Assembly: GCA_011109175.1 (NCBI GenBank)
Contig: RDEW01000039.1
Coordinates: 279,681 to 343,680 of the forward strand
Direction of reading: 5' to 3'
DNA from: Dicyema japonicum
Taxonomy: Eukaryota; Animalia; Dicyemida
Length of the DNA: 64,000 bases
The translations under genes were made by a program, and so were the position numbers. The notes beneath the pieces were generated by a model. It was not told the origin of the DNA. It made no database searches and saw only the letters and a list, made by a program, of their open reading frames with translations. This document shows, piece after piece, positions 1-64,000 of this stretch. Positions within the stretch are counted from its first letter, which is position 1. The number at the start of each line of letters is the position of its first letter.

Positions 1-649
1 TGAGCGGGATACGGCAACTTTGGTGAATGAAGGGTACATCACCGCAGAATCTGGATACCAGGTGTTTGTGAGGAATATTATCTCGGTTTTTTTCCGTTTT
101 TACTTTAGGATATTCGGAATAAACGGAAACACGCCCTTGTACGACGGAAGGAGATCTCCCACATAAAGATGACTCTGAAGGACCTGGAGTCTAAGAGACA
201 GTTTAAGTTGGAGCAGTTGGATTACTACAATAAGTACATTCAAGCAATTTTGGAGTCCCAGCCAAAGAGGCTCAAAAAGTGGGGTTTTGGTGATGATTCC
301 ACAGAAACGTGTTTTCACGTGCTCGGAAACCGAAGCTGAAGTATGTGGGGACCAAGCTGTGGGAGAAGGGAGTGCTGATGTCCGTGAGTGGAATCGTTGA
401 GAGAGAGTAAGATGTTGTGTTAGATGCAGTTTCAAAAAGCTGCAGATTGTGATTGAAGAAGGAGAGGAGGCTGGGAGCTTTACGGTAACACCGCTGTATT
501 TGGGGGTGGCTATGAAAGTGACGGGGTTTACGTTTCAGAACCTGTTGGAGTTGCAGAGAGGAGGCATTGGGACTATTTTGTTGGATAGGGCGACTTGTAA
601 TGTTAATTTGTTGATTCACCTAATCAACAAAAAAATTTATTCCAATTGA
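1..649 (+). CDS. IQGAP: IQGAP-family scaffold protein, 3' end (RasGAP C-terminal region); 5' part lies outside the window
   Basis: Removing GT-AG introns 86-108 (23 nt), 279-304 (26 nt) and 407-429 (23 nt) gives one open frame: ...ESGYQVFVRNIIS-DIRNKRKH...EQLDYYNKYIQ...KLKYVGTKLWEKGVL...FQNLLELQ...CNVNLLIHLINKKIYSN*. This matches the IQGAP C-terminus I recall (DIRNQR, EQVDYY, KLHEKGVL, VNVNLLIFLLNKKFY). Confidence 0.92.
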
Positions 650-2730
650 TTTTTGATAAAATTAATGGTTTTTTGGTTCATTTTCACTTTTTTTATTTTC
701 ATTAGTTTATTAGGCACTGGGAACAAATAAAAAACCAGATGCCAAGAGAATGTGAGCATTGTTCGAGTGATGTCAATTTCTTATAGAAGAGCACTCAGCT
801 CCGTTCATCCGAATTAAGACTCGAGTGGTGTATTTTTGAGTATTTCTTTTCTGAAGTTCACTGTTCCGTTACTCTATGCTTTTTTCTTGATGGCCACAAA
901 CTTATGGAATTAGTCCATGAGATGTACATGAATTAATACCGAAAATTTGATAACCCTAGTTCTTTATAATGTTGATTGATATTTTAGAAAAGTTAGAAAC
1001 CTCATTAGGTCACTTGGATTTAGGATATCAGTCGAATATTGTTTAAGTTAGTGGGAGTAACTACATACTAATACCACAGCTACTTTAATATAGCACCAAT
1101 TTATGATATGCTGTCAGGAGACACACAGGTTCTGTATTACTTTTAGGATAATTGACCCCACTTTCTCCAAAAGCAGGTGACCCCCATGAAAACCATGGAA
1201 TGCAGAACGGGGAAGTTGAAAGCAGACTTGATTGATTCCACAGAAAACAGCTGAGAAAATAAAAATTTAAAGATAACCTAAAAGCTTTGTGTAATTACAT
1301 CCACCTCAGGATTACTCAGAATTTTTTTAATATTTTTAACCACGTGGTGCTGCCCGTTTGGAAACCTGTATTAAAGATTAAAGTAGCGAGTTTTGAAAAT
1401 TATCATTGAAAGTCACGTGTCATGATAAAGTTGACAGGCATTACTTATCAAAGAATTTCCAGAACTTAAAGTCTTATTATCTGGTTCTCTGGAACGTTAA
1501 GGTCCCGACAAGTATGCCAGTCATAAAGGGCCACCTTCGTGCAAGTGCGTACCCCAAAGAGCTTATTTTACGTTTAAAACGCGATTAAAAGGGGATCCGA
1601 CAATCAACTAGGACTGTGCTGCATGGGGGACAAACAAAAGAAGATCGAAGACTTTTTATAACAACAGTAGACTTTAAACAACAGTCAACAGAAACTATAA
1701 GGTTGTCCACTTGGCTGTTGATACAACTCCTTTCGAGGTACTTGTGAGAATTGTGGCACTAATGGCACCTTAAAAGTGCTAATTTGTCGTTGAATCTTGG
1801 TTAATTAATCAAGGGCTTGATAGCTATCATCAGTGGAGTTGGTGACATACCTAGATTCCAAAAAATGTATACTTGACCTTCTCGTGAACATGGACTAAGT
1901 GATGGACTTGGGAGACATCGGAAAACAAATTCTGAACAAAGGAAGTGTCAGAGCTGTAGGACCTTAGAGGATCATTTGTCTTGTATGATCTTTAGGATCA
2001 GAATGATAGTAAACTTGATTCTATGTATGCTGATGATAGTCTCCTTAACAACGGATTATGGCGTCTGAACTCATTACTTATTTATCCCCTGTCCCTTTGA
2101 GAGAAAGAAATTGATGGCTATCAAGAATGTCCAGCCAAGAGCGGACACTCCCAGAGATCTGACAGGTGTGTTTTGTTATGTACAGAACTCGGAGGCGAAC
2201 CTGGACAAGAGAAGAGGTCTTCATGTCGTCAAGAAGGCTTGACGGACAAAGTGGAGAGGACGATTAACTAATTCGTATAAATATGTGACCCCCATTGTCC
2301 ACATCTTGTTTCTTCCTATGACTTGTCCTAGAGTTCTATATTAATTTCCATAAAAGAAGGGGTTCTTGTCTCGTACCTTGGGTAGGACTACATGTGGGAC
2401 CTGACTTGACAAAACTTGAGGATATTTTCACAGTTTTAAGGAAAATTGTTGAATGTTGTTCGAGTGATCTATCATTTGACAGTATTCAACGTTAGGTGCT
2501 TGTCTCGTAAGATAGAGAATACTTTCAATCACAGCTTTATCAGGAAGCTAAGTCACGAAAACGCCTTCACTGAATGATTTGTGGAGTGGGGGAGAGCAAG
2601 TGTTATATTTTGCTAGGGCGATTTTTGTTAATAAAGTTTAAAAATGTTTAAAACTTATAAAAATGTAGTTTTTAAAATATTATATAAATCAAAAGTTATA
2701 AAGTCAAAAAAGTCAAAATTTTGTGTAATT

Positions 2731-3825: not shown

Positions 3826-4419
3826 GGTAATGTCAAAAAAGTCAAAATTTAATTTATGTCAATAAAGTCAAAATTATTATTTTTATTTGATTTTTGATTT
3901 TTTTAATTATCGAGTTTTTAAATAAAATAATAGCGTGGAATCAATTACACTGCTAGTGCGTGCTGGGATCACGTGATTAGTTAGTTTGTCTAACCGTGGT
4001 CTTTGGTGTTCTTATTATTCACTGTGGTGCGTTCAATCAAGAATGACACTGAAAAGAATAAGTCTGTTGTTAGAAAATATGCCAGTGAATTTTCTATCAA
4101 TTCACAAGGAAATCTCTTTTGTAATTTATGTGGACATGTAACTGCAAAAAACAATTTTTATGAATCACATCAATCGTCTAAGAAACATATCAAATTAGCA
4201 GGTTTATTATTTTATTACTATTTTACAGGTGTCAAATATTGCAAACTGATTTTTTAAGGCTTTTGTCGAATCCGATTTTCCTTTGCATAATTTGAACAGT
4301 AACAGCTTACGAGACTTGTTTGAGAGTATTGGACATAATCTTCCATCTACTTACGCTTGCCGAAAAAGTGTAGAAAATTTATGCCAGAAGCAGCTTGACA
4401 GAATTAAGCTATTTTGAGT

Positions 4420-11755: not shown

Positions 11756-14514
11756 TAAATTTTATATGTATTTGTCTAAGATTTATTTGCATATTCAATC
11801 AAATGAATAATTTTCGATCAATATAATAAATTCAAATGTTATTTTTACTGCTTTTCTGCAGAAGAATTATATAGGGGTAAACTTTTTTATGACCCCTCAA
11901 ATTCTTTAGCGAGAATAAGTTCAAGTTCTGCATGGAAAAAACTGTTCGACATTCCCCAACGACCTTCAAAAGGGTGGCCTGTCAATTTCTATGACTCTAA
12001 TTAATATTAAACCAAGATCACTGTTAAACCAGAATAATGAAGCTAAACCCACTGTCCGGTCCCGATAGAAGGGCCAAGTACCTCCATTCCTTCGATTTAT
12101 GGATCAACACGACTGTTTCTGCTTATCATTGTATAACATTTCCTTTGGACCTATTTATGATGAACTCAATAGAGAAAACAATGGTAACGTAGGCCCAGAG
12201 ATCCAAGGGCTGTTTGGTATACAAGAAATTGTCTGTCTATAAGTTGACACGTGGGATAGATTGATATCTAACTTCGAATGAGACTCCTGAGTTTACTAGA
12301 GTAACTACCTGAGTTTATTTCTAGACAACCCAGTGGATGCAGTCTCTTACTGATGATCCTCCAAGTTCTTTTAGTGAGAATCGAACCTTGATCCTAAGTG
12401 CATCCAAGACTTCCTTTGCTCAGAACTTTGAGTTTTCGATGTCTCACGAGTCCTCGTTTATGCCTACGACAAGAGAGACAAGTGTTTAAAACATACTGTT
12501 TCTACAGTCATGGACAGCAGGCAGATGCTAAAGAAGACTCCCCCATCATCTCAAAAGTCACCGTGACGAAGACGATTTATGATTTTATATCAACTCGAGC
12601 CATTCGTTGTTTAAAGAGAAAAGCCCTTCTAGGCGACACCCCCCGCCAATAGACGATTCAGAAGCCATCTTCCCAAGGTGATTCCAGAAGAATCCTATAG
12701 CAAATCCACTAAGGACATTTTCGCCTCTGGGATGGTTCAGAGTTTTTGCTCCCCTGATCTGACCAGCTTGATCATCAATCAAATCCTTCCCTTAGTCTTT
12801 ATTATATAAAACAACACCTAAGTCGTTGGGGAACACTCAAGGAGAATTCGGGAGCTATTGAAGGCTGGGATCACCTAATTAGTAAGTTTAACCTTTTTTT
12901 CTTGATGGTCTTGGCGTTTAAACAAATAAAGAATATCAAACATACTAGAGCATTAATGAATCACTTCACCCCCTAGTTGATACAGGGAATGACCACGGTA
13001 ACACCAAAGTAACAGCCCACGTGCTGTAATAGAGACTCCAACATGGTCGATTCTCCTCCCTTGAGCCTAAACAAGCACATATCGGCCGTATAACTGGATC
13101 TTCGTAGTCGTACAGGCCGGTGGGTAAAAGTTGGTTGGCAAGCCCTACCGTTTAGTATTACTTCCCCCTAACAGGCGGGTTCCTTACAGATTAAGGATTC
13201 TAGAAGGACTATAGAGGGGAACTTTTCTGAAAGGTAATTTCTGATTTCGAATCCAGTAATTAGTGCATCCGATTCTCCTTATTTTCATAAGTTAGCATAT
13301 CCAATGTCTTCTGAGTTCAGAGAGAGACAAGAGGTTATGTCTATATTGAGGAAATAAGTGTACTATGCCTCAGTGAACCAATACTACGCCACAGTTCTAC
13401 CATTATTAACTCCTAATTTGGTGGACCTCTACATTTATGACTTTGAAACCCATATTTCAGGAGGTTATGATTACTTTATTTTCGAAAATAATCATCTCCT
13501 CCCCCTTTCGGAGTAGGATGATCTTTTCCCAGCATTACTTCCCTCCCAGGTAAGCCCTCGTTTGGAGATAGGAAAAAAAGAATCTTTTTGTGTTCCAGCC
13601 AATCATTGGGCGTTTACGGAGTTAGGTGGATCCATATGCCTCTAAGAGTGGATGAAAAAAAATCTTCGACCAACATTTTGATGCATGAGACCACACAATA
13701 CTGGATTATCTACTTCCGGCTATTTCTGAACTGTAGAAGAGAGTTTTCTTTTGATAATAATCTCATAGAACCATCAAGGACCTGTTCTTGTGTTAGAAGT
13801 GGTTGATAAGTCATTAGTTGACCTCAAATCGAGGTATCCATGCTAGAGGACATCGACCTGGTCTTCTACCCATGAGCACGGAATAGGCTACTGAATTGTC
13901 GAACTGCTCGGTTATCTTAGGAAAACTAAAGGAATAAGTTGATTTTGAAAATAAGGTTATGGAACAATCAGGGACCTGTCTTTGGGTTAGAAGAAGTCGA
14001 TTTTTTTATGTCAAATTGAGATTGGGACCAATATAGACTGTTCCTAAGTTAGAAGAGTTTGGGAAGTCATTTGAGATCACGACCACGCACAACTGTCCCG
14101 AGTAAAAAAGGTGAATATGGTCTCTTTACTAGACAACTACCAGATGGGCCACCTCTTTTCATAATCTGTCTCTGACTTCTACACCACACCAGATACATCC
14201 GACTGATCTCTGAGGATAACGGGAGAAAACAGTTAATAGGATCCCGAAAAGAACACAGTAAAGATGAGGATACTGAGAGACGCTGGGATCTCCCAGATAT
14301 AAAAGATAAATAATCATACACGTGCCAACTCAAAACTGATAACCCAAATTCCATCAAGGTTTAAAAATTAAATCCTATCACTAGGCTCTAATCCACGTGT
14401 GTTGGAAGAGAGTAATTAAAAGGGATATTACCGTATAAGATATGAGACCATCGTTAAGAGATCCATTCCACAGGGAATCCTTGACCTGATGACTAATATT
14501 ACTAATTATTTTAT

Positions 14515-15140
14515 TATTATTTATTAACCCCGGATACACCGAGAAGAAGTTAAAGTAACCAACTAATTAAGTGTATCCAGTGTCCACTTCTACAGAAACA
14601 GAGTCCATCCGGAATCAACATAAAAGGTAAGATGTCCATTACATGCAGTTGTGGAAACCCCTCCAGTGGAGTGGGGGAGAGCAAATGATCTTTTTTTCGT
14701 GCCGGCCTGGAACTGGGCGCCACCTAGACAGGTGGTTCATATGACGCCACTCTAATAGGAAGAGAGAGGAGGAATAGACAAGCAAACAGAAAAACTTCGA
14801 CCAATTAACCACACAGCACCACATGGTTTTTTAATAACTCCAAATACACAGAGAAAGAAGTTAACAGTCACAACTAATTAAGTGCATCCAGTTCCCAATG
14901 TCACAGAGTCCTTCCAACGTCACGCAAGTCCACCCTGATACACCATAAAATGTAAGAGACGTCCATTCCTTGCAAACCCCTTCAGTAGAGTGGAGGAGAG
15001 CAAATGATCCTTCCCCGTGCCACCCTGGTACTGGGCGCCAGTTCCACTCTAATAGAAAAAAAGGAGAGGAGGAACAGACGAAGCAAACAGAAATCTTTAA
15101 TCAATTAGCCACGTTACACCACGAGGCGCCACGCATGACT
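14515..15140 (+). repeat. Two tandem diverged copies of a ~310-bp dispersed non-coding repeat
   Basis: Shared blocks actaattaagtg(t/c)atccag, gtggag..gagcaaatgatc, ctgggcgcca, ccactctaatag, aagcaaacagaaa at 14515-14830 and 14835-15140. An inverted copy lies at ~26500-26755 and a fragment at 2581-2600. Confidence 0.8.
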
Positions 15141-22800: not shown

Positions 22801-22900
22801 GAGTGTTTTTCAGACATTTTTCTTAACCGTTGTAAAGAGAAGAAACGAGGAACGTCACCACCTCACCAAAAAATCCAATGAAAACAGAAAAAATTCTGTG
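19825..22900 (-). mobile_element. Near full-length RTE-clade LINE (APE + RT), frameshifted
   Basis: APE motifs TFNVRG, GCLQET, NQIDYI, SDHRIV; RT motifs KSAGPDNI, QSGFREGRSTAD, DLSRAFDS, GTPQGDSL, YADDVDF; C-terminal RWRLFGHVLR...RGRPR; 3' (TAA)n tail at ~19825-19840. Confidence 0.9.
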
Positions 22901-24500: not shown

Positions 24501-24579
24501 TCGAGGGAAAGTACCATCAGGAAGATTGTAATTTTCTAAAATAATATAAAATGATATTTTGGAGATCAATTTAGCGTTA

Positions 24580-36870: not shown

Positions 36871-36875
36871 AGAAT

Positions 36876-41989: not shown

Positions 41990-44830
41990 TGGGGCCAACC
42001 CCTATTGACTTTATAGGCGTGTTCACGTCGCTGCACACCTTACATTCAGAGACTAACCTAGGTTGACATTCCCTGCCGTCTTCCTAATCAAAAGGCATCG
42101 ATACTCCATGCCTCTCCTCAGCTTGCATACTCTCCAAAGTCTTCCGTAACACTAGCGTCTGTATATAAGCTTTGAATCTCTCCTCCACTTTGAGAGTATC
42201 CAGGTGGCCTTTGAAGAATCTGGAGACAATTCCATCCCATGTGATGACAACTGGGTCTTATCATAAACGAAAATGTCGGGTTTGTTATTCGTTACAGCCA
42301 TATCCGCACTGATCGTCGTGTCTACACGAATCTCCACAGATTCATTTTAGCCAACAGATTGTACTCAATGGGTCTTCAGTTTCTTAGTTTTTCTTATTCC
42401 ATATTGACGGCAGAGATGTAGGTGTAACTGACCTCTCTTTATGCCTTTTATGCCGCTTGAGATATGAGCTATTCAGCATTCTCCCACACCTAGTTGCAAC
42501 TGATCGACGGTCTTCTTTGATAAGTTACAATGTCCGCACTTAGTTTCTCTGTTATCAAAAAACATGTTAAGTTCCTGACGTAGACACAGTCTCACCTCGG
42601 TTATAGGGGAGTGATTTCAATGCACTAGCCATCCAGAGGATTCAGCAATGTTCACTTCTATGTCTTTCAAACACGTGTGTGATTTCTTTGAATTAATGAC
42701 CCGTAGAATTCCCGCTCTTCTTAGGCAGTAATTTGCCTTATGTCACCATAAAATCAGAAAAGCATTCGTTCTGCTTTGTTACTGACAGACTCAAGGCCTC
42801 TTCCAAATTTATTTCTTGATAATAAAGTCTTTCTTTGTCTGCCGGTTGCAAGTGTATGTGACTATCCACAAGAATTCTGCGATGTTTTTATCAATCTGTC
42901 CAAATTCTGGAGGCTCGATATCGATCAATCCAATGTAATAGAGTGATAGTACATACTCGTTCATCCCCTTCAACAGGTTTACTGAGTTTAAATCCGTCTT
43001 TGTCAAATTTTTAATCCGCTTAGATGCTTCTTCATAGATTTTATCCATAGTTTCTTTTTTTGTATGGATAAGATATCGTATCCATACAATCCATCAAGGA
43101 AACGGGCTTTCTCGGACAAGGACTTCACGTTTGTTGTAGATTTGTCAAAGTTTCTCTCCAACCCAGCTGCATCAAAAAACGATTCAACTTCCTCCAACAT
43201 CATTTCCATAGAGTGACTATGGCGAGAAAACAACTTCATATCGTTTATACATAGTATGTGATTCGTCGAATAGGTTGGTTCCCCACTTCCAGTACTTCCC
43301 GTCGTTACATTCGGAGATTTTCCGTTCAGCATTTGACAGAGAGGGTCCATTAGAAAAGCAAAGATCTGAGGAGAGAGTCCCCCTGCAGAATTCCTGTTTT
43401 AAATTTTACTTCTAACGTTTTGTTTCCCAAATTCAGACAAATCTTCCATTTTGTGACAAGTTTCTGAATGAACCTGACAATCCAGAAGAAGACCAGAATT
43501 TTGTAATAACTGATCCAGAAAATGGTGGTCGACCGAGTCATAAGCTTTTTTGACGTCAATCCAAGTGGAATTCAAACTGTTTACATTTTGTTGATTTACG
43601 CACTTGTTGACGATAGCCTGTTCTTTCGCACCTTTGAAGTTAAGTTCTTGATAAAATAGTTATGGACTCCATCACTACCAGATGCCTCCAATTTGGAAGC
43701 ATCTTGATAGTCTCGGTGATTTCCTCATCAGTAAAGTCAGCGAAAGAGTTCTCTGATCCAGTCACTCTTTTGCTAATAAAGAAATTGCTCATCTTTCGCT
43801 CTTCCTTATTCCAAAATGGAAGACATTCCTCCCCACTGAACTTGATGACTGCCTTCTTATTATCTTATTTTATAAATCACCTTCTATTCAATTCGAAGCA
43901 CCAGTTGGCACTTTTAAAACTCTTTCTCGATTCGTAGACTCAAACTTCTCAACAATCTTTATTTGATCGCGAACATAAGAAGAAATCCTTTCGAGTTCTT
44001 CCCTCTTCGATTTTTTAAAGCCTATGAGCATAAGGTATTGCGTTTTCTTCGTCAAATTGATTTTCCTGTTCAATTCACTAGCCATTTGAATTTGCTAAAG
44101 TTTTTGCTAAGTTTAGGGAATTTCCTTTTCATTGATTCTTCCCAAATACTTTTAGTGTTTTTCTTCTTGGTAGGAGCCTCATAAGTACACTGCCCAGCAT
44201 TTATGATATCAGTGATATCGTTGATATCCAAGCTTGGCAAGGAATCAATATATTCCTTGATTGCTGCATTAATTCCACACAGAATCTCCTTTCTAAGTAT
44301 TTGTCTGAGAATTTTCCTAGTAGGAATACGAAGGTTCCTTACTGAGGTGAGTAATTTCGCAATTTAGCAACGAAACTTATCAAAACATTTTCCGAAATTT
44401 GAAACTTCTACCAACTGTTTTTCTTCCACTGATAAGCCACAAAGTGATTCACTGTACTTGGAGGAGAGCAAGCACTTGAAATTGCCAATGGACTTCAATG
44501 TCCCGAATCTCAAGTTAAAAGCTTCCATAATCAGAGGCTAGCCACCACAGAGAATACTCTTGAATCTGGATTTTGCAGACTCAACGACTTCCACAGCCCA
44601 TTGTTTCCGGTCCACAGTGTGAACTTTGTCAACTAGACATTGCAGAGAGAGAAGATGTTCTTTAAAGTCAGTATTGACAACTTCTTGCGTTTTTGGCAAG
44701 TCATCGACCACATTCTCTACGGTCCTTTTGTTTTTTCTTTTAGTAATTTTCGTAGATGGGTTGAATGAAACATATTTTTTTCTTTGATTTTTTTACTTTA
44801 ATCTTGGAAAGTAAATAACGAGTTTGTAAT
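41990..44830 (-). mobile_element. R4/Dong-like non-LTR retrotransposon (RT + REL endonuclease), frameshifted
   Basis: GILQGDSL, DPLCQMLN, NHILCINDMKLF (decayed YMDD region), NEYVLSLYYIG, EIRVDTTISADMAVTNNKPDIFVYDK (PD-D/ExK). The 3' end is duplicated at 46060-46233. Confidence 0.8.
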
Positions 44831-45059
44831 AGTTACGGAGTCTGATATAGCGAGACACAATGTGTCTCCTGTCACATTCCATTACTGTTACGCTAGCCAT
44901 TACAACTACAATAAAATAAACGTTACATTACTTGACCTCCTTTTTTTAATTATAAAGCCAATTAATCAGAAATTTTATTATAATTAATAAAGAAAAGAGA
45001 GTTAACGAGATCTTCCATACGACAGCGGAACGTATCTTTAACGTCCGGCTCGAGGATTA

Positions 45060-45660
45060 CTCATGGAAGCAAGCCACGCTGACAGTGAGACTCGGGAGAC
45101 TTGGAATTCGGAACCCTGTGGACCTTTCACTCCCTTCATGCCTATCTTCACTAGTGGCTTGTAACTCTCATGTCAAGAGGATTCTACACTCTCTACCTGA
45201 ATTCTCTATTGACAAGGACGCCGGCCATGCTTGTAAGGCCTAGAGCCGCACTTATAAGCTTTCCCTGCCTTCCTCGTTCTCTCAGCGAGGCTCGGACGAT
45301 GCTATATGCTGGAATTCTTTCAAAGATTTGCTAGTGTCTTCTAGCCAACATCACCGTGCCTGTTTGTTGTCGGGGGCGTCTTCCGAGAGCAGTGCCTGTC
45401 ACAACGCCATTTCCAATGGAGTTCTGGGTTCTATCCTGGATGATGAATGCGTCCGTATTGGGATCTCATTGCGACTGGGATTAAAAGTCTGTGTTCCACA
45501 TCCGTGCCAATGCGGAGACAAGATCGACTGTTTTGGCATACACCCTCTCTCCTGCAGGAAGAGTGCAGGCAGATTTCCCAGACACATGGCCTTGAACGAA
45601 ATCGTTTTTATCTGTTTGAAAAACAAATCCTTCTGCTTCATTGCAAATACAAGGCATTGT
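45060..45660 (+). mobile_element. CRE-clade fragment
   Basis: LGIRNPVDLSLP...LGSILDDECVRIGISLRLGLKVCVPHPCQCG...HPLSCRKSAGRFPRHMALNEIV. Confidence 0.8.
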
Positions 45661-46059
45661 CTTAGAGTAAACTCCACTTGGAATACAACGACATTGTTCA
45701 TTTCCCGTTGGATTACCTTGAATTAAATTTTGAAGTTCCATTGTCTAATTGTATCCACTTAACATTACGTCCAGTTGAACTTACCATCAAAAAACCAATT
45801 ATCGTTCTTATAGTATCCAGCAAGGTACAATAATATATCTCTGTTTCCTAATAAAAGTTCATTAAGGTGTCTATTTATTTCAAGAGAATAATTTTCCCCT
45901 AAAAACTATTTATGGCTTAAAAAACTTTATTTTTTCACATTCCGATTTTGACTCATTATTACTGCCACGATGTAATTTGTAAATGAAGCATATTCCATTT
46001 ATTACATTAGGAAAAATACGGTGGTGGAAATAATCTGGACAAAGACGAAAAACTAAAAT

Positions 46060-46233
46060 GACGACTTGGAGCCAAATCCTATTGACTTTATAAGCGTGTT
46101 CACGTCGCTGCATACCCCACATTCAGAGACTACCCTAGGTTGACATTCCCTGCTGTCTTCCTCATCAACAGGTATCGATACTCCATGCCTCTCCTCATCT
46201 TGCATACTCTCCAAAGTCTTTCGTAACACTAGC
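46060..46233 (-). mobile_element. 5'-truncated 3' end of the R4-like element
   Basis: Near-identical to 41990-42158. Confidence 0.8.
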
Positions 46234-46599
46234 GTGACTTGAAAATGTTTTTATTGGCCAATTTTTGAAAGTCTTGAGGCATTTCCGTTCGACAGTGTGA
46301 ACAATGGAGACGCACAGGCTATGATGGCACGTTTGGTTGCGGGATCTGGGATCACCTAACTAGTTGACTTTACTTTTGTCTTTTTTCTCGGTGATCCCGT
46401 GGTTAATAAATAAATTTTTAATTATTTTTTAATTACACGTTTCCAATGCGTTCGTTGAATTGACTAAGGAACAACTTGAAAAATTGAGAAATTTCAAAAT
46501 AATGGAAAAATCATTAGACAGGAAACAACGATTTCGATTAAAAGAACTATCGAAAAAATTTGTTTTTTTTCACTGTTAGTTAGTTAATAGCACTCCCGC

Positions 46600-47090
46600 G
46601 TTGCCATAAGCACGTAAAATGTCTAGGGTTTCGCTCGTGCCGTACACTCTACTATCCTCCTAGTCAGCCCTCTCCATCTATCTCTGTTCCTCGCGCGTTT
46701 ACGCTCAAGATCGTCTCCAGTTTTGAGTTGACCGCCAATTCGTGCGTAATCGTTATTCAGGCAGAGAGGAAGCGTACATCTTGGCCGACCCCGAAATCCA
46801 ATTCCGTGATTTGAATAGTATCTTCCATGATTGCAAGGAATCACTTCGTCCATTCTCAGAACATGTCCTAAAGGTCGCCAGTGTGAGGTAATTACTTCTC
46901 CGCTTATCGGTTTTCATTTACATAATTTGTAGAGAGTTTCGTTTTTGATAACCTGTGGCCATTTGATTCCCGCGATTTTTCTCGATTGATTTCTATGAAA
47001 TGTGTCCAGTCTGTCAAGGTCCGTTTTTGATGTTCCCCATGTTCCCGTTATAAATAGGACTTGTTGTATGAACGCGTTTTATAAGCGCAT
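46600..47090 (-). mobile_element. RTE 3' fragment
   Basis: FRGRPRCTLPLCLNND...LKTGDDLE...RDRWR parallels the C-terminus at 19867-20349. Confidence 0.7.
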
Positions 47091-47660
47091 CCGAAGATTT
47101 GATGAGATTATCACTGAAGGATGATATAAAATTACGGTTTTTTGCAGTTGAGGATAAGGAACTGAAATTAACGATAATTGAGGTAGTGTATCTGCTTTAT
47201 TGGAGTCTGAGCATAATAAAAACCATTTTGGCAGAGATAGACTTAATAGTATGGCGGAATAGTTTCTACAACATAATGAGATGAGATATCCGCTTTGTTT
47301 TAAACAAATGTGTTTATTGGCAAGTATTGGTTATTTATTAGCCAGTCAAAAAATGATGGCAACAAAGCCACCTATTATTCCAATTATTGCCCGAGGTCCA
47401 AGAGACCGTTATATCGCAGATCTTATAGATCTAAGAAGATATTCAGAAGTAAATCGATCAATCTCGTGGGTAAACTTTAATAATTATTTATATGAAGGTT
47501 TTAGTCGTCGTTGACTCATTCACTAAGTTTGCTGTTGTGGAACTGGCAAAGAATAAAAGTGTATTGGAAATCTCATCTCTAATTCTTCAAACTGATAACA
47601 AAAAGGAGTTTCGAAATTTGAAATGGATTAGCTCTGTGAATTTTTTAAAATAGAAATTTC
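47090..47660 (+). mobile_element. Ginger/KRBA2-like DDE integrase remnant
   Basis: PPIIPIIARGPRDRYIADLIDL, VVDSFTKFA and LQTDNKKEFRN are rve-type integrase core motifs. Confidence 0.7.
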
Positions 47661-48082
47661 GTTTTTTAGAAATTTCGACTGGAAAGGTCACATTAATTCA
47701 GTTTAGATAGCCACGTGTGACAAGTTACTGTTCTCATGGCGCGCCTTCATGCGGTTAGTATATGACTTTCAAGACTATATGAACAGAATCATACAATAGG
47801 GTTCGTGTTTTGTTACCTCGTGCTAGACGACCTCAAGGCGACAAAATTAACTCTCTTGTCCTGGTCCGTTTCTTTTGCCAGTCCTGACTGGTCCCAGGAC
47901 CTCTGCTTTTGATTGTAACTATTATGTCAGCAAGCTATTTTATTCACTTGAAGGAATTGGGGGTAAATAAATCATGTCTGTAACACTAATAAAAACGAAA
48001 AATTAAATATAATCGATTTATAAATAAAATAATAAAGTTAATTTATTTTTTTAATTTGTTAACTTTAAGTTAAACATGTTCC

Positions 48083-49486
48083 ATGTGGGGCATTTAAGAA
48101 AATTCGAAAAGATCATTACAAGGAGTCGATACGTTTCATACTTTGGACGGACAGTGCGACCTTCTACAGAGATACGCTTTTGGACGAAGGAGACCAAAAC
48201 ATCGAGGATAAACTTAAATGTACAAAACTTTAGCTAACACCTAGCCATCTTCCCTGAGAAGAACGTGGAGAAAAATTATGTTGACATTGGACTGAAGCAA
48301 AGTGCAAATATTACGCCTCACAAGCACCAATAAGAAGGCGGGAAAATAAACATTTAAAATATTCAGGAAAAGAATTAAGTAAATGATAAATTTAAAAATA
48401 GAAAATTTGTTTAATTTTAATAAAATGCAAACTGAGTACTTCAGAGAGGAATATTTTCAACATTTGGACAAAATTGCCCAGCATTACGGCATCTTCAAAG
48501 ACCTGTTCACGATTTGACATTTTTCCCGCCTTAAAACTTTTCATCAAATTTCCAACTAAAAATGGTCGATTCTTCACTGTTGAGAGTGGAAATTACATAT
48601 CTCCTACTGAAGTGAGGAATAATGTTTATTTCAGTGTCAACTAATTCCAACTGTAAGTTTTGACGGTTCAAATGTGGCAGAAAACAATGATTTCTTTACT
48701 CTGATGATGATCTCCCTTGATAGTAACGTTCTAGAGGACTCTGAAGGACATATTCTCCACTGGATGCTGTAACTTGGGTCGTAACTCATATAGTGGCAAT
48801 ATTCACGCATCTGAAGCAAAAGACGGTGAAAATTTAAATTTAAGCGGGAAAATTAAGCGACAATATTTCCCGCCAATTCCTGCACGTGGCACTGGCTATC
48901 ATAGAATCGTGTTTTTGTTGTATAAGCACTCATCTGAACTGGATTTATCGGATTTTGTGGTCCCTGAACTTACTGGAAGGTTTTAATCGGTTAACTGAGC
49001 TGTTAGGGATTTCATAAAGGCGAGGATTTTCCATTCACGGAGCTTCTTTGAAAGATTCTCCGCAAACGGGTTGAAACCCGTAGGTCTGGCCTTCTTTCAG
49101 ACCACATGGGACCTCTCAGTGAAGGATTTCTTTCATAAGAGACTGAGTAGTCGTGTAGCTTAGTCAAAGTGACTGAGGAGCCTGTGTACGAGTACGACTG
49201 GCCTGAGCCGATTTACCCAAAACAAGAGGCTTTTCCTGCTAAAAAGTCGTTCTGGGCGTAAGATTGGAATCACGTGGGTAGATATTTGGACAGATATAAG
49301 GACAGAAAGGAGTTGGCTGAAGAGGTTCTGAAAGATCGGATTGCACGGGAGAGTCCATTCCAGAAGCAGTCTTGGGAGATGTCTAGTGTGGACAAAATTG
49401 ACCGTGGAATGCCTACTTGGTGGAAGGAGGTTGAACGGCTGAGACGTCTTAAGAAGGGGAAGTTCTATGATGAGGAGCCTATTTGA
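48083..49486 (+). CDS. MRPL38: Mitochondrial ribosomal protein mL38 (PEBP fold), invertebrate-type C-terminal extension; several frameshifts in the 5' half, start approximate
   Basis: VDIGL, IAQHYGIFKDLF, GNYISP, HILHWMLGNI, YFPPIPARGTGYHRIVFLLYK, LAFFQTTWD, PVYEYDWP, YLDRYKD, MPTWWK. Seven introns of 23-27 nt (e.g. 49258-49281). Confidence 0.9.
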
Positions 49487-50724: not shown

Positions 50725-51181
50725 TCAATAAAACTGTCGAGGCTTTTTAAAAAGGAAGAAAAAGTTGGGATGTACCAGCCTTTTGAGCACGTGCTGTTTA
50801 TATTCTGGGTTTATTGAGTAGAGAGGCAAGCGATCCGGTCTTTTGGTGACTTGGAAATGTTTTTTATTGGCCAATCTTTGAAAGACTTGATGCTTCCAAT
50901 CAGGTCTTTGACAAAGTTGAGGACACGTGAGAATCCACTGAAAAATTTGGCTTTTTGTTGCTTGGCCGGTAGGGTGGGACTCAATTGCAAGGGAGATTGA
51001 ATAGTCGAGAGATCGAGTAGTGTACTTTATGCATTGTAAGGGGAGGGTAACAAAATTGAGCTTCTTCTGGAGATTTTGTGGACTTTTATGAAGTCGTGTA
51101 AAAGCCAGTTTAACGGCTGAAGGTCTTCTTGTGAACTGAAGAAGTTATTTCTTTGAACGTTATTGTTTGATTTTTTCGCAT
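50725..51181 (-). CDS. Divergent forkhead-box gene, FoxN2/3-like; two apparent 1-nt frameshifts near the 5' end
   Basis: EDLQPLNWL (cf. FoxN2/3 EELTNLNWL), then SISLAIESHPTGQATKSQIFQWIL...PDWKHQVFQRLANKKHF...LYSINPEYKQHVLKRL (cf. MAIEDSPTKRL.VKDIYNWI...GWKNSVRHNLSLNKCF...LWCIDPEYRQNLIQAL). In-frame 27-nt GT-AG candidate intron at 51051-51025. Not in the ORF track. Confidence 0.75.
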
Positions 51182-55656: not shown

Positions 55657-57276
<1,620 letters not shown>

Positions 57277-58114
57277 GGAATTTTATTAATATTTGTTGGT
57301 TAAAGAGTTTATTTTTGTTATGTTATCTTAACTTTTCCCAATTATGGATAAGAAAAGAGATGTCCCTTTTTTGTCGTCTTGTAAATTAACATGAATACCA
57401 CATGGCTATGAATTAACATGGATAGTTCCAGGTCACGGAACGGGAACCGGTCGAGAAGCTTTTGGTATTTCTCCCATTAAGGCTTCTTGCTTTTTCTGAA
57501 ACGGATATGCTTTCACCAGCCTCCAGATGATGTTTGTAGGAAATAGTGCCGTCTCATACAGAAATGAAATTACTCACTTTTTTATTTTCAAGTAACGCTG
57601 ATGACAGCCGACTTCCAACATGTTAGTTAAGTTGGTAACAAACTGTAACCAAGCTCAGTGGACAAGGATTCCCAGTAACTGTCTATTGATTTCCACAGTC
57701 CGTACACAGCCTGTCCCCCGAGGTATGGAAAATCTAAATATGAAAATATTGAACTTCAAAATGACTCATAGAAATATTTTTGTTTATTTTTTATGAAAAT
57801 AAATTTTTTACTACTTGTTTCTTTTCTTTAAAATGTTCTTATCGTCAGTGAATCCACACCACAAGAAAACTATCTGATAGTAGGTAAATGGGAGAGGTCA
57901 ATATCTTTCTTCACGAAGAGAAGACCCATATGATAATCAGTCCTGGTCCATTTGCACTTATTTGATATTAATCGTTACGCTTTCATAAGCCACTGGTTTC
58001 CTTCATCTCAACAGCATGCAAATCAAAGCCGAGAACCCTGACTCCATCACCACCTTAAAGCGAAAGCATATCTCTCCCCAGGCACTAGAACTGATAGCTC
58101 ACTTATTCAACACA

Positions 58115-58560
58115 TAAGGCGATTTTTGTCAAGTCAAAAAAGTCTTAATTTAATTTTTTAGGTCAATTATGTAAATTTTTTATTGATTTTAATTTTTTAA
58201 TTTTTAGAGTTTTGAATAAAATACTAGCGTGTTATCAACTGTTGTGTCTCGTTCAATCAGCAAGATCATTGAAAAGGTAAAGACAGAAAGAAACATATCA
58301 AACTTGTAGGTTTTCATTTTTACTACTATTTCACAGATGCCACTGTAAAAATATCTGATTTTCTCATACCATCTACCGACTCTAGGATTAATAAGATCAC
58401 TACTGCTTAGTCGAATATTATTTTCCTTGCATGAATTGAACAGTAAAGTCTACAATACTTGTTTGAAGGTATTGGATATCATTTTACTACTTCCTACGCT
58501 TCCCAATAGTGTAGAAAATTTCTTACCAGAACGATAAGTTGTTGAATATCATCGTAAAAA
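58115..58560 (+). mobile_element. Third, internally deleted copy of the CGGBP1-like hAT family
   Basis: Starts TAAGGCGATTTTTG; 58130-58280 matches the reverse complement of 31150-31310; 58420-58530 matches 4280-4390. Confidence 0.7.
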
Positions 58561-58648
58561 TCTTAATGAAGTAGTGCCCTCACGCGATCAGTCAACGCCT
58601 AGAAACGTGGAAGTGCATAAAGACTCCAAACTCTTAAAGTGGTTTAAG

Positions 58649-59289
58649 ATGCCTGACTTGCCGGTTCAACCTCTTCTTGTTTGTATGAGACCGTTTCTTT
58701 AACTGTGAGATTTGTTGTCCCCCAGAAGCTTGTCGATACAAAGGATTTTGAGGGCATCCGTGTCCTTAGGCGTGGAAAATCTCTTTCTTTTGGGGATAGA
58801 GAGTGGAGGCTTCGGACTTTGTCCAATAGGGAAAGTGAGATCTCTCTTATATTCGTCATGCTCCGGGGATCTGTAATCATCTGAAATTTTGAACTTTTCG
58901 GGGATCTGTATGTCCAGAATGAGAAAGTGATCCCGGATGAAAAAAATCTTCGATTAGCAGTGGAGGTTATTGGTTGGGGGATACAGGCATTCGGTTATTG
59001 TTCGGAGACGAGTGATCTGAACCCTCTGGATTTTCTCGAGGTTACTTGAAGATATACAAATTCCCCAAGCAGGAACGGCATAGCTAGAGTCACCATGTTC
59101 TCACCAAAAAAATTGAATTGCTTCAAGAAAGACAGGAAGGGTCAAAGAGGAGACCGATTATTTGGGGGTTCATGTGAATGGGGAGGGGTTATCACTCAGC
59201 CACATCATTGGTTTCAGATTGAACTGACGGTGGTCACTTCTGGAAGTGTCACATCATACTTCTCTCTTGCGGTGATGTCCAAGTTCTGA
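58649..59289 (+). CDS. Putative host gene of unknown function (faint MATH-domain resemblance)
   Basis: Coding-like composition; ATG at 58649; open segments YETVSLTVRF...SLSFGDREWRLRTL and GSCEWGGV...FQIELTV; converges on mab-21. Exon structure unresolved. Confidence 0.3.
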
Positions 59290-59372
59290 AGCGACTTGAC
59301 GGGAGATGGACAGAATTACTTAGTCACCCCCACCTCAACTAAAAAAATAAAATAAAATAAAATTTTAAATCC

Positions 59373-60425
59373 TCAAGAAAAAATAAAATTATTCAAAATC
59401 CTCAAAAGTTTCCCCGCCATGAGTTTCTTCACTTTCAAGTCTGCAGTGAGGATAATGTTTTTTTCACAAAACGGGCTTTTGTATGAATTATTTAATAGAA
59501 TCGCAATCATGTTAAAAATTACCATGTTAATTACTTCCCCTGTCGACGTTTGTGAGGGATATCTTTGCACAATTTGCGTCATCCCCCGTAGCACAACCGA
59601 ACTGATCAATTCGTTCATAAAATCCCCCGGAAATTCACTTGTAATGTAATAATTCGCCAAATCCGATATAATTCCGACATTTTCACCAATCGTGGGGATT
59701 TTATTGAACAGCACGTGAACTTTATGAACGTCAAATCTCCAGTAATCACCAGTGGAGGTCGAATCGATCTCTTTGGCGTGAACTAGGTGAAATCCTGTGT
59801 TGATTACTTCCTGGAAACTCAGGTTCCACTCTCTGCAGTAGTATTCGAGGTATCTCAGCGAGGAAATGGGCCAGTATTTCCTGAAATAAAACGTTGGTAT
59901 GACAACAAGAGTGACCCCATTTGGTAAAATGAGTTCAACCCCCACCGAATTGGTCCCCAATGAAATCTCCGAGAAGGTTGGGACAGTTTTGATTACGTAT
60001 TCAGCTAATTTGATAAGGTAGTCCTCGATTTTTGTGGGAGAAATATTCGATGGGGGACAAATAAAGTCAGACCATAAACAAAAATGTCTCTTCTTGACAT
60101 CATACGGGCGAATAAGAGCAATATCCTCCCACGTGCTGCTTTTTTGATGTTCAATAACGAGTCCAGCCTCATCGAGGCATAAATAGAACTTGTATTTGTT
60201 TACAGAAATCACTTCGACGTCATCGTCCTCAATGAGGAGACACGTGGATGAAATTCTAGGGTCCTTTCTCTCCACGTGCGCCATAAAATCAATCAAGAAT
60301 GCTTTGCTCTGCCATATTTTTGTCAAATACCTGAGAAAGCCGGGATTTGACAGTCTCCTGTAGTTGTACCCTGAAATTGTCTAATTTTTTACTCCACGTG
60401 CAATATTGTTGTAAATGCCCATCAT
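59373..60425 (-). CDS. mab-21: Divergent Mab-21 family protein (nucleotidyltransferase fold, probably non-catalytic); apparently intronless with two 5' frameshifts
   Basis: Colinear with MAB21L1 as I recall it: VERKDPRISS/VEVQEPRFISS, VEVISVNKYKFYLCL/LEVISPTEFEVVLYL, CLWSDFI...ISPTKI/SLWVEFI...LSARKI, VIPTF...YWP/ITPAF...IWP, TGFHLVHAKE/EGFNLLSKE. Confidence 0.8.
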
Positions 60426-60559
60426 AAGAATTTGGTTGGGAATTACTTTTATAGATGATCATTCAGATTAGATTGATGATAGATTACTGGTTAATTACGA
60501 TTCCTTTGATTTGCGAATATTAATTCTCCCCCTGCTGGGATTCGACTAAGGACATTGCG

Positions 60560-60830
60560 CGGCTTCATCAAAGGGCGAATTTGGTTGATGAACATATTTC
60601 TTGCCGATGAAGAGGACGAGTCAAAATACGCGGTCCTACCTGAGATGTTTGTTTGTTCCTTGCAGTTAAAATATCCAGCATTTTGCTCTTTCGACGCTGG
60701 GATTCCTGGGTCGTCTAGGGAATCTGATTTCTACACGCACAAGAGATCATCGTGAGCGTTGTTGGATGTTTGAGTGAATCTGAGAGGGAATACCCAGGCA
60801 GTCAGGCGGCTACTGTATGACCCTCAGATT
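60560..60830 (+). mobile_element. Old CRE-clade 3' remnant
   Basis: EDESKYAVL...FLGRLGNLISTRTRDHRERCWMFE parallels the CRE terminus at 25070-25290. Confidence 0.5.
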
Positions 60831-61591
60831 AATTGTTTCTTAATGTAATAATTTTTGTTTCTGTCATAAATGAGATATTATGATTAATTATGACATTCCA
60901 CGTCTACTTAGTAATTTTATTTCAAAGTCCGTAGTTTCAAGTTTATTCAGAAATATTCTCTCTGTGCCAATCACCCTTCTCTAGAGCCAAACAAATTGAA
61001 CAGATCTTTTGGATCTTAGAAAGTGAGAGATCTTGGAAAAATAATAACACTTATTTTTTTTCATTTAATTGTTTTGATTCCCTTTTCCCATACAGATTCC
61101 CCCAGGTTTCGAGCTAGACAGAGATCGAAACCAAATATTTTCTTATCCAACATTCCTTCACCTTCATATCGAGTTTTGTTGATCCAATGCAGGCAAAGAG
61201 ATCCAAAACTTCTCTTCCATGCAAATATAAGTCCTTCATTGATGGTCTTTGGGAAAAAATTATGGAACGCTGATCTCAGGAGGTCGGGACCCAATATTTT
61301 TGTTTCTTCAAGGAACCGTATAGCAAAAGTGGAAACAAAGTCGTGATTTCATTGGTTTAGGTTGTGTTTTTTGGCAAAAAAATTATCCCGACTTTAAATT
61401 GAGTAAAACACGTGTTGATTATTTATTAGCTATTTTATATTAGTTATGTCAGTTAGCGATAGTAAGTCATTGAGTCAGTCAGTAAATATTATCGTGAACA
61501 CAATTATGAACCACAGATAAGCATTCCCTGGGACAGAATTTGTTTTTCCCTTTGGACAGCTACTATCCCCAGTGGAAGTCTAAATGTCGAT

Positions 61592-61740
61592 ATTACAAGC
61601 TACAGTCCTCGTTGGAGTACAATTCCCAGAAGAAGCCTAAACTGGTAATATTATAAGCTACAGTTGTCGTTGGAGTACAACCCCCAGTAGAAGCCTAAAC
61701 TGGTAATATTACAAGCTACAGTTGTCGTTGGAGTACAATC
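61592..61740 (+). repeat. ~58-bp tandem repeat, about 2.6 copies
   Basis: Unit ATTACAAGCTACAGT(CC/TG)TCGTTGGAGTACAA..CCCAG.AGAAGCCTAAACTGGTAAT. Confidence 0.85.
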
Positions 61741-61839
61741 ACATATGCACGTGGTAGTAATAGCGGCAAATATGACTAAATTATGAGTGAGAATAAACCC
61801 AGGAATCTAACAAGCATATCGAAGACTTATATTTACTAA

Positions 61840-62779
61840 ATTCCGCTATTTTTGATTTTTCTGTTTTAAGTATTTGAGTCGTCGTTCGTGAGTGCACACA
61901 GCTGTGTGGAACTCTACTTGTTGGTTTCGATGATCATTATAGGTCAAGTTCTCCCTTTGAAGTAATTTGAATTAATTAGGTCAGTGATACCCTTTACAGA
62001 TGATTTCCCTCAAAGTTCCTCCACTAAGGATGTTGAACCATCCTCTCCCACGTTAAGGTTGTTAAAGAAGAACTTCAAGAATCCAATCATTCTTAGTCAT
62101 TTAGTACGGAAAATGACGTTTGTGGGAGAACTACATCATCAGCTGAACTACTACCCCATCAGTCGACTGGTGACCGAATTAACTTTATGAACATGGAGGA
62201 TTGAAGTCATCGTCCTATTAAGTGATCCCGGTGCCTGCGCCTCTTCACATTTCGGTGTAAGGTCACTCGGAAACCCACTAGAGAAGAATCTTTCATAAGC
62301 CTCAGTAGGGGGAAGGTTCCTTTCAAATCTAAATGCATATTTCAAGGAGGCAAGAATCTCTTCTTTAGTGGGTTTCTGGGTGACCTTGCTGTTTTCAGAA
62401 AATTTCACTGCCTGTCCGTCAGATATTAAGTTGTTTTGTGCGTACAACGATGTAATCCATTCATGCCTGTTCGATAGTTGGAAAGATGTGAAATTGGTAT
62501 AACGATTCATGGAAAAAATAGAAGAAACGGAGGATCTGGAAGAGGTTTTGAGAACTCCCATCTTCTTTTGGACTCGAGATTAAATCCACGTGACGTGTGA
62601 ATGTCAACACTGAGTATAAAGTAATTAGGAGGTCTTCTTATTGGAATGAGCTTTCCGTTCAAAGTATCTTTTCGATGTATCTTTTCTGAATGTTGGGGAT
62701 AATGGAGATCCTTGAGAGACCATATTCGGGAGGTTACAAGGCTTTCAAGAATTATGAGTTTTAGGAAGAAAAAACCCAA
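61840..62779 (-). CDS. Putative secreted or membrane protein of unknown function (multi-exon, frameshifted)
   Basis: Signal-like start MGFFFLKLIILESLVTS; long open segments 62779-62507 and 62561-62151; further exon-like blocks towards ~61840. No family recognised. Confidence 0.35.
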
Positions 62780-64000
62780 CCTCGACTCATATCAGATCTT
62801 GAGAGGTACTTTAAAGAGGAGGACAATGTCAAAAGTGTAATCCCTAAAGTAGGACTCTAGAAACAAGAAAAACTTTTACCATTCATTCTTTAGAATGAAG
62901 GTCTATTTCTTACAAATCAGAGACAAATGATGAAAATATCTATCCGATCAAAATGAGAATATTTCATAGTAGACTATTATTGTACAATTACTGATAAACT
63001 AATAACTCCCTCGTTCCTCCTCAAGGCAGAGAGTTTAACCAAGTCCCTTTTACTTGGGCAGATGAGATTGGAACCCTTACATAGGTGTATCCAATGCTCC
63101 TTTATTCCTAAAGTTCACGTATCAGGTGTCTCTTGTGTCTAATGCGAAGACGAAGGGTTCCTCCTGAGGCGATGAAGACATTAGTATTGAGACATCCGCT
63201 TTTTTCGCATGCGCCACGTGGAGCCTATCAAAATGCCGAGAAGACAAGATATCCAGAAGGCATACAGAATGAAGAAACAGTGGGTCACGGGAAAGAAACA
63301 ACTGCCATCAAACACTAAATCTCCTGCCTTTTAAACGCTGCAAGGTACCTATTACTTCGTGACCAGCCAGTTCTACTTCCACTACATGTTTCTGTAGTCT
63401 GCTGAATTCGCGAATTTAAAAACGTATCCACAAATCTAGAAGCATCCAGACTTAACGGGCGAATCTTCTTCCAGCCATTTTCAGCTGAGAGCCCTTGAGT
63501 TTTTAATCTCTGCAATGTTCTGTTCAATGAGAAGGCTCGCCGTCTAACTGGTGATACAGGTAATCCATCGTCCTACGGTTTTGAGGGAACTCAATCCATT
63601 CTTTAGATAGCCATTAATTAATTGTTTCTGTCGATTTGTCCACAACTATCAGCAAATTCAGTTAATATAATTTTCACATATCGTCGATATCACCACAAGG
63701 AAAGTTGGGAAAATCTTACCAGTTGGGTTGGTCTTGTTCATTAATCCACCAAAAGTGCATTCCAAGTGGACGATCTAGTCCGTTAGTTCGCTCAATGATC
63801 CAAAATCTCACCAGAGATCTACGTGAGACTGGATGGCTTCGAGAGCGTATCTCGATAGCCATTATCACAGGAAACACTTGGTAATTCAAACTCCCTAGAT
63901 TATTTAAATTATTTTTTTGATTTAATTATAATAAAAATAAAATTAATTAAAAGTACATTAATTTGTGTGTTTCATTGTTAAAATTATTTTTATTATTAAA

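Follow-up and report, generated by a model that had tools for sequence, protein, structure and literature searches.

The hexamer CACGTG occurs 56 times, as exact matches found by pattern search, in a 64,000-nucleotide stretch of the genome of the dicyemid Dicyema japonicum (contig RDEW01000039.1 of assembly GCA_011109175.1, positions 279,681 to 343,680 of the forward strand). This 64-kb stretch, from which all counts and densities below are taken, is referred to as the window. In the resident, non-transposon DNA of this animal, CACGTG is a genuine highly iterated palindrome: the perfect palindrome lies far above Markov expectation, the excess is confined to the complete word with half-matches at background, and the sites are dispersed through coding sequence (in all frames) and non-coding DNA without forming part of a longer repeat. 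The tested features of the cyanobacterial HIP1 signature, namely palindromy, large excess, dispersion, frame independence, and survival of codon shuffles, are all present, and HIP1 is the closest known system. An original prediction made from the sequence alone had described CACGTG in these terms, as a dispersed, frame-independent word of coding and non-coding DNA that is scarce in transposons, and that description is borne out here.

Enrichment of the complete palindrome

Shuffling the window with dinucleotides preserved gave 6.13 CACGTG (100 shuffles, standard deviation 2.41, maximum 12), and an order-1 Markov model predicts 5.7, so that the overall excess is 9.9-fold. The original prediction had expected about six, in agreement with both values, and each of the 56 sites it reported is where it had been placed. 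By the order-1 model CACGTG is the most deviant hexamer of all (z = 29.9), and the words ranked next overlap it. An order-4 model, in which 5-mer counts are already included, still predicts only 34; the excess therefore survives Markov models of orders 1 to 4. Other palindromic hexamers reach at most 2.3-fold in the window. When the outer letters are varied (NACGTN), the combination C..G is found 56 times and the remaining 15 combinations 5-14 times each, and the earlier counts of 4-10 for each of the near-misses CACGTC, CACGTT, and CACGTA were about right. The GC content, previously put at about 35%, is 38.3%, and the CpG observed/expected ratio of 0.81 indicates that CpG depletion is mild.

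The 30 bases on each side of CACGTG share no sequence, and there is no flank conservation past +/-1. At position -1, T is avoided (18 observed and 35 expected in 112 folded half-sites, p = 0.001), and weaker deviations are found at positions -2 and -6 (p about 0.01). The palindrome is not extended: 19 of the 56 sites are palindromic 8-mers, where about a quarter would be expected if flank bases were equally frequent. Spacing in non-transposon DNA fits an exponential distribution (Kolmogorov-Smirnov p = 0.75, coefficient of variation 0.90), with dispersion at 1-2 kb mildly over Poisson because genes are richer in sites. There is no sign within the window of regular or even spacing, of strong clustering, or of one site per promoter. 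A strand asymmetry was also seen around the palindrome, with A at position -3 of the plus strand in 32 of the 56 sites and at the mirror position on the other side in 13; this may come from genes lying mostly on the plus strand and from codon position.

With the motif masked, no second iterated word was found, and only AT-rich words such as AATAAA stand out. Over the whole masked window, 12 occurrences of the 8-mer GTGGGAGA or its complement were counted, with 2.0 expected, and 63 of GGGAGA, with 32 expected; the source may be a fragment of a repeat or another iterated word of weaker excess.

Sites in coding sequence and in individual genes

The 1237 verified host codons contain 11 sites, distributed 5/2/4 over the three phases, which upholds the earlier statement that the motif falls in all three frames. 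The excess survives codon-preserving shuffles: synonymous-codon shuffling gives 1.56 expected (maximum 7, with none of 5000 shuffles reaching 11) and shuffling of codon order gives 0.68, so that codon bias is insufficient, as had been argued. Transposon open reading frames (ORFs; 1153 codons) have no site, with 0.5 expected. Where a peptide can be spelled with the motif, the motif is used in 9 of 12 cases in host genes and in none of 7 in the RTE-type element described below. His-Val dipeptides number 7 with 1.8 expected (3.8-fold), and only those spelled CACGTG exceed expectation, which argues that most coding sites came with amino-acid changes and not by recoding. None of the five sites aligned to homologues (in UAP1, Forkhead, and mL38) has an indel at the motif; since the alignments are gap-free there, the sites appear to have arisen by substitution and not as a six-base insertion or excision footprint. 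A transposon-derived repeat or excision footprint was considered as the source of the sites and rejected, given that only two of the 56 share a repeat and that the five aligned sites lack indels.

UAP1 (UDP-GlcNAc pyrophosphorylase, 55657-57275, plus strand) is identified by Pfam UDPGP and by PDB matches (E = 1e-32, and AGX1 with E = 3e-31). It has the six sites previously claimed for it (55884, 56729, 56836, 56941, 57100, and 57250), all within the transcription unit, and none in the 1.2 kb upstream. Its introns are 22-44 nt long, a size reported among animals for myxozoans and D. japonicum only (PMC13644364), and the site at 56941 lies inside a 27-nt intron. At 56729-56734 (plus strand, phase 0) the motif encodes His-Val where homologues have His-Phe or His-Tyr ('nicihvfs' versus 'nicnhyfs' and 'nianhfft'). 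At 56836-56841 (plus strand, phase 2) it encodes Ile-Thr-Cys ('kkitcl' versus 'kkipci' in a fungal and 'kkipyv' in the human homologue) and displaces Pro from the conserved KKIP(C/Y) stretch. For one UAP1 exon the protein homology search returned no further homologues.

Two sites each had been assigned to a chitinase, to MRPL38, and to a Fox gene, and these assignments hold, with Pfam or PDB matches for every gene. The GH18 chitinase (32184-33576, plus strand; Pfam Glyco_hydro_18, E = 1.7e-21) has sites at 33095 (phase 1, Pro-Arg-Ala) and 33526 (phase 0, His-Val). The gene for mL38/MRPL38 (48402-49483, plus strand; Pfam PBP, PDB mL38 E = 1.6e-6) has sites at 48883 and 49271. The first of these encodes a conserved Ala-Arg-Gly ('pargtgyhr' versus 'pargsgihr') with Arg as CGT, a codon used for only 4 of 56 Arg residues; since the conserved residues are kept and the rare codon is used, this site is a purely synonymous fill. 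In the Forkhead-domain ORF (50728-51144, minus strand; a weak Pfam Forkhead match, PDB FoxN3 E = 7e-5), the site at 50924 encodes Leu-Thr-Cys where homologues have (E/D)-x-F, and that at 50788 encodes His-Val where FoxN3 has Asn-Leu. A RhoGAP exon within the window is a further verified host coding exon.

A 335-codon ORF at 59376-60380 (minus strand) had been named mab-21 and credited with five sites. Five were indeed counted, of which four (59712, 60130, 60241, and 60273) lie inside the ORF; the fifth, at 60395, is just upstream, beside a homopolymer assembly error. These sites are covered by contigs with zero to one difference. The identity of the gene is suggested by protein language-model features only: neither a Pfam match nor a sequence homologue was found by profile and protein homology search, and all ten of the ten best language-model neighbours belong to Mab-21 families (score 0.94). 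Its nearest neighbours by this measure are all Mab-21/cGAS-like nucleotidyltransferases, and the ORF seems to be a highly divergent representative of this fold.

Read support and assembly quality

Illumina-derived contigs from four 2019 runs (one sample) and one 2017 run (another sample of the same organism, from another study) were aligned to 55800-61790, a stretch with 13 motifs. The 2019 runs behave as DNA, and the 2017 run was treated as RNA because its contig omits a 44-nt GT..AG intron of UAP1 (55923-55966). One contig spans the site at 59712 with no difference, and contigs with a single difference span four more sites. Among the differences listed (40 of 188 base differences and 12 of 61 indels), none changes a letter inside any of the 13 motifs, the nearest being a flank variant at 57099. 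The motifs are therefore present in DNA and spliced-RNA contigs of two studies, as the original prediction required, and the sites are not an assembly artefact; the read check is strong, though not exhaustive.

The same alignments give several observations on the assembly. Relative to most or all read sets, the window is short of single bases, mostly in homopolymers, at 56022, 56234, 56377, 57192, 60384, and 60621-60658. These missing bases frameshift UAP1 and the N-terminus of the Mab-21-like ORF, and because such indel errors shift frames, the ORFs of the window understate the real exons. The errors fit the published assembly, which was built by merging assemblies of PacBio RS II and of Illumina data; the animals were pooled, and their heterozygosity was 1.24% (PMC6736024). 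Two haplotypes about 4% apart (about 20 linked differences) are seen at 56786-57211, in the 3' part of UAP1, where the contig of one run is like the window and the remaining runs, including the RNA run, have the second haplotype; neighbouring stretches differ by less than 1%. The RNA-like 2017 contig also joins 58728 to 59143, skipping 414 bases with ends CT..GT on the plus strand, which could be a long non-canonical minus-strand intron or an insertion polymorphism.

Distribution among compartments and repeats

Compartments were defined from exons verified by Pfam or PDB and from classes of ORF length. Host codon usage is too near background for scoring exons. A de novo spliced-ORF search by dynamic programming was abandoned, because a light intron penalty threaded random DNA and self-training was captured by the codon usage of a long interspersed nuclear element (LINE).

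The uneven distribution reported earlier was found again. Transposon-labelled DNA (17.45 kb) has 3 sites with 1.95 expected (1.5-fold, 0.17 per kb), and all other DNA (46.5 kb) has 53 with 3.77 expected (14-fold, 1.14 per kb), a difference with a binomial p of 6e-5. The verified coding exons (3.7 kb) contain 11 sites with 0.40 expected (28-fold, 2.96 per kb). The 8.75 kb of non-transposon DNA in which no frame has an ORF of at least 50 codons (GC 31%) contain 13 with 0.43 expected (30-fold, 1.49 per kb). Verified gene spans are richer than the remaining non-transposon DNA (2.7 versus 0.9 per kb, p = 8e-4). The motif had been called gene-associated, and this is correct insofar as verified genes are the densest compartment, but it does not extend to a restriction to genes, as the ORF-free, AT-rich DNA is enriched 30-fold.

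The scarcity counts for transposons were likewise reproduced, with one site in the RTE element and two in a block of about 14 kb. The RTE-type LINE (19870-23185, minus strand) has long open frames, with reverse transcriptase (RT) and endonuclease at 19870-22552 (Pfam RVT_1 and Exo_endo_phos_2). Its single site, at 22583, lies outside the 823 codons of these ORFs, which have none. The transposon-rich block (33577-47711) is marked by Pfam RVT_1 fragments, the degenerate RT remnants lying at 34095-34433 (plus strand) and 43006-43659 (minus strand), and its only sites are at 38905 and 42672. The former belongs to a dispersed repeat with CACGTG inside: a copy at 3950-4007 (plus strand; self-BLAST, 90% identity over 60 nt) carries the site at 3970, and the other copy, at 38871-38930 on the opposite strand, carries that at 38905. 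One of the three transposon sites was thus inherited within a repeat family.

Two further repeats have no site. These are at 58000-58600 and 60600-60800, where the contig depth table gives a word depth 12-85 times that of single-copy DNA and many contigs break at the edges; both are probably miniature transposons. All 13 sites of the stretch 55800-61790 are in single-copy DNA and none is in these two repeats. Only 4.6 kb of the window is self-similar, with in-window repeat pairs 70-92% identical; the motif is common to both copies of one pair, and the copies of another pair differ at three letters. A tandem pair of units of about 290 nt, 70% identical, is also present at 14517-15112 (within a region noted as 14507-15112), with a third copy, 85% identical, on the opposite strand at 26517-26760.

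The force behind the excess

Depletion of near-misses, which would be a sign of a drive, is not seen in the window. Transition neighbours of the motif stand at 0.97 of the order-1 expectation in non-transposon DNA and 0.91 in transposon DNA, and transversion neighbours at 1.20 and 1.34, respectively. The gap between transitions and transversions (0.97 versus 1.20) was considered as a property of the motif and rejected, since it is equalled in transposon DNA and so belongs to the Markov baseline. CATGTG and CACATG together number 17 with 16.7 expected in non-transposon DNA and 8 with 7.0 expected in transposon DNA. Since neighbour levels are equal in the two classes of DNA, the excess of the motif neither drains nor feeds its neighbours.

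Stationary distributions were calculated for a chain of 4096 hexamer states with the approximate composition of the window and a transition/transversion ratio of 3. Repair of the central CpG only, of the very-short-patch type, gives at most 4.8-fold enrichment and empties CATGTG/CACATG. Correction of all six transitions toward the motif gives at most 18-fold, with transition neighbours at 0.57 or less. A fixation bias for the whole hexamer of strength S gives 13-fold at S = 2.6 and 30-fold at S = 3.4, with every neighbour at 1.00. Since only this last model matches both the enrichment and the baseline neighbours, a fixation bias with S of about 2.6-3.4 is inferred from the model, whereby an allele with the perfect hexamer would beat any alternative. 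The same comparison argues against a bias of mutation or repair that is restricted to a subset of the six positions. The methylation-directed or partial repair drive entertained in the original prediction is accordingly disfavoured: CATGTG/CACATG and the other transition neighbours are at baseline, CpG-only repair is limited to about 5-fold in the model, and the very-short-patch pattern of a depleted deamination product with a modest rise of the target is not what is observed.

The deficit in transposons had also been offered as a mark separating genes from transposons, but it does not establish one, as transposons less than about 10% diverged since insertion would show no detectable excess yet under a bias of S about 3. 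At this strength, about 50 gains would be expected for each unit of neutral divergence from the 55 one-letter neighbours present in 17 kb of transposon DNA. Under this estimate, the three transposon sites are compatible with divergence since insertion of up to about 10% (P = 0.06-0.12 at 10% and 0.3-0.4 at 5%) and incompatible with about 15%. Because the repeat pairs are 70-92% identical and the frames of the RTE element are still open, transposon age alone may explain the deficit.

A proposed dimeric reader and the alternatives

The explanation proposed here, tentatively and with somewhat less than even confidence, is that the motif persists because a DNA reader, acting as a symmetric dimer, makes dense use of it across resident DNA. 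All-or-none reading of a perfect palindrome implies such a dimer bound to double-stranded DNA, and the candidate class of reader would be a Max-like basic helix-loop-helix leucine zipper (bHLH-ZIP) protein. On this view no single promoter site would matter; it is how densely resident DNA carries the motif that would count, as a chromatin or 'resident DNA' mark, and transposons without the motif would be young, unmarked, or both. A 5' flanking T is reported to be disfavoured by Myc/Max-type factors, and the avoidance of T at -1 fits a reader of this class. Expanded bHLH-ZIP genes, for which the original prediction had proposed a search, are not indicated by the genome paper: it lists 14 HLH-domain genes for D. 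japonicum, the fewest among the species compared, although these few are still among the largest transcription-factor families left in this animal (PMC6736024).

Several points weigh against a reader. The near-cognate E-boxes CACGCG and CATGTG have no excess, though transcription factors usually tolerate near-cognates. The overwriting of conserved residues and the lack of even spacing are what is expected of a blind drive. Selection and gene-conversion drive have the same equilibrium pattern in the model, which cannot separate them, and the Markov model takes no account of dependence between a hexamer site and those next to it. The data are limited to this one window, with small neighbour counts, and the 'non-coding' class is defined by absence of ORFs, with no annotation used.

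A stronger form of this proposal is doubtful. CACGTG might be an animal 'resident-DNA' mark, by which a Max-like dimer reading densely arrayed perfect E-boxes would license expression, retention, or amplification, and transposons lacking CACGTG would be treated differently.

The sites could instead have been spread by a neutral gene-conversion drive on the whole hexamer, with the chromatid carrying the perfect CACGTG as the preferred donor in heterozygotes, an explanation that is possible though on the unlikely side. This could come about if a bound dimer locally protected CACGTG against breaks in meiosis or repair, in an inversion of the recombination-hotspot paradox. The motif would then spread although the animal gains nothing from it, and transposons would lack it only through youth. 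Such a drive would reach the equilibrium that selection does, with an excess of the exact hexamer and neighbours at baseline. It would be blind to protein cost, as in the lost Pro of UAP1 and the lost aromatic residue of the Forkhead domain, and would leave Poisson-like spacing with no regulated density; a divergence since insertion of no more than 0.1 would allow the transposon deficit to be a time lag. Heteroduplexes are available for it, as the UAP1 3' haplotypes are about 4% apart and heterozygosity is 1.24% (PMC6736024). However, the protein-constrained verified exons are the densest compartment (3.0 per kb), and since a drive should do best in unconstrained DNA, this weighs against a blind one unless exons are simply the oldest DNA. 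In addition, literature searches found no hexamer-specific conversion bias, and we know of none in any eukaryote. Dicyemids are reported to be self-fertilising, which would weaken a drive.

Methylation-directed repair, comparable to that of Dcm/Vsr at CCWGG in Escherichia coli, would act on a central CpG methylated by a site-specific enzyme and restore T:G mismatches to C:G, and the motif would build up in consequence. The palindrome, its central CpG, and the enzyme-like all-or-none specificity are suggestive of it; cyanobacterial HIP1 is tied to orphan methyltransferases (PMC4390886, PMC13756078), and TET enzymes are reported to prefer CpGs within bHLH sites (PMC9451156). It is nonetheless very unlikely, given that the model ceiling of about 4.8-fold with CATGTG/CACATG emptied is far from the 14-30 fold observed with both words at baseline. 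Moreover, the CpG depletion noted above is only mild, and the genome paper names no methyltransferase of D. japonicum in those portions of its main text and supplements that were examined (PMC6736024).

Ordinary regulatory E-boxes, that is, promoter or enhancer sites of Myc/Max/USF type that are dense only through the compactness of the genome, are a highly unlikely explanation. The sequence is the canonical E-box, genes are the densest compartment, and the exact core is accompanied by a factor-typical flank preference, the bias against T resembling that reported for Myc/Max-type factors. The location of the sites is not that of promoter or enhancer elements at one to few per gene, and for this reason they are not members of the regulatory E-box class: UAP1 has its six sites in the body and none in 1.2 kb upstream, 11 sites are in verified exons in three phases with some costing conserved residues, and spacing is Poisson-like and not one per promoter. 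With a genome of 65-67.5 Mb and 5,012 genes (PMC6736024), about 1 site per kb extrapolates to about ten or more per gene.

An artefact of composition, codon usage, assembly, a hidden repeat family, or a transposon footprint is barely conceivable, for although homopolymer indel errors are present in the window against every read set and two of the 56 sites are in one dispersed repeat, the count is reached neither by dinucleotide shuffles nor by Markov models of orders 1-4 nor by codon shuffles, DNA and RNA Illumina-derived contigs of two studies carry the sites, flanks are not conserved past +/-1, only 4.6 kb is self-similar, and the sites came by substitutions with no 6-nt insertions.

Comparison with known systems

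Known E-boxes and G-boxes, bound by Myc/Max, USF, TFE, and yeast Cbf1 and Pho4, have the identical sequence and are also recognized as palindromes by dimers. Yeast Cbf1 is a general chromatin-organising factor, with a role beyond gene-specific activation. Known E-boxes are nevertheless promoter and enhancer elements that are not enriched through coding exons, whereas in D. japonicum both gene bodies and ORF-free DNA are filled with CACGTG, at about 1-3 per kb, without enrichment of near-cognates.

Chi of Escherichia coli and the PATC signal (periodic A/T clusters) of Caenorhabditis elegans germline genes are over-represented in resident relative to mobile or foreign DNA and act by density. Like CACGTG, they are short features that are commoner in resident DNA, although for CACGTG a marking role is only a proposal. 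Chi is not symmetric and is oriented with replication, PATC is an intronic A/T signal with a 10-bp period, and neither is a palindrome found in every frame of coding sequence. Dcm/Vsr repair (CCWGG up, CTWGG down) and GC-biased gene conversion are likewise forces at the DNA level that act against selection at the protein level. The signature of very-short-patch repair, a modest rise of the target with strong loss of the deamination product, is absent for CACGTG; GC-biased conversion has no specificity for a motif, and no other GC-rich palindrome here exceeds 2.3-fold.

HIP1 (GCGATCGC) of cyanobacteria is, like CACGTG, a short perfect palindrome with a central CpG-type core. It is 15-300 times over-represented (PMC5861425), and CACGTG is likewise in excess by one to two orders of magnitude. 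Both are found in genes and spacers and in all frames, without a longer repeat, and both are rarer in recently acquired DNA. The published conclusion for HIP1 is selection and not biased repair (PMC5861425), in agreement with the neighbour analysis of CACGTG, which excludes only a partial repair bias. HIP1 differs in being a bacterial octamer with two cognate orphan methyltransferases and a periodicity of 10-90 kb (PMC5861425, PMC13756078), while CACGTG is a hexamer of an animal, has the sequence of a eukaryotic E-box, and shows Poisson-like spacing within 64 kb.

Full-text literature searches found nothing on CACGTG or E-boxes in dicyemids, on Dicyema together with DNMT1, or on CACGTG as a highly iterated palindrome, and among the matches listed none described a similar excess of a hexamer in any eukaryote. 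Motifs, palindromes, and methylation go unmentioned in the D. japonicum genome paper (PMC6736024). The claim that no animal example had been described agrees with these text searches, in which such a pattern was described only for bacteria. What is new here is the read check, the neighbour baseline and the model against partial repair bias, the caveat of transposon age, and the ranking of compartments.

Implications

Highly iterated palindromes are a thirty-year-old puzzle from cyanobacteria. The same signature in an animal, on a canonical E-box, indicates that such a force is not limited to bacterial enzymes or processes, and in a sexual, polymorphic eukaryote the choice between selection and drive becomes testable. 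If the hexamer were a resident-DNA mark, it would be the first animal system, encoded in the sequence itself, for distinguishing self from non-self DNA by a highly iterated palindrome, and it might be connected with what is reported from dicyemids, namely somatic DNA elimination and extrachromosomal circles. Motif density may also serve as a simple clock or classifier of resident and recently arrived DNA in the D. japonicum genome. The fast protein evolution of dicyemids is well known. A force with S of about 3, strong enough to rewrite conserved residues, would add to it and could distort phylogenies.

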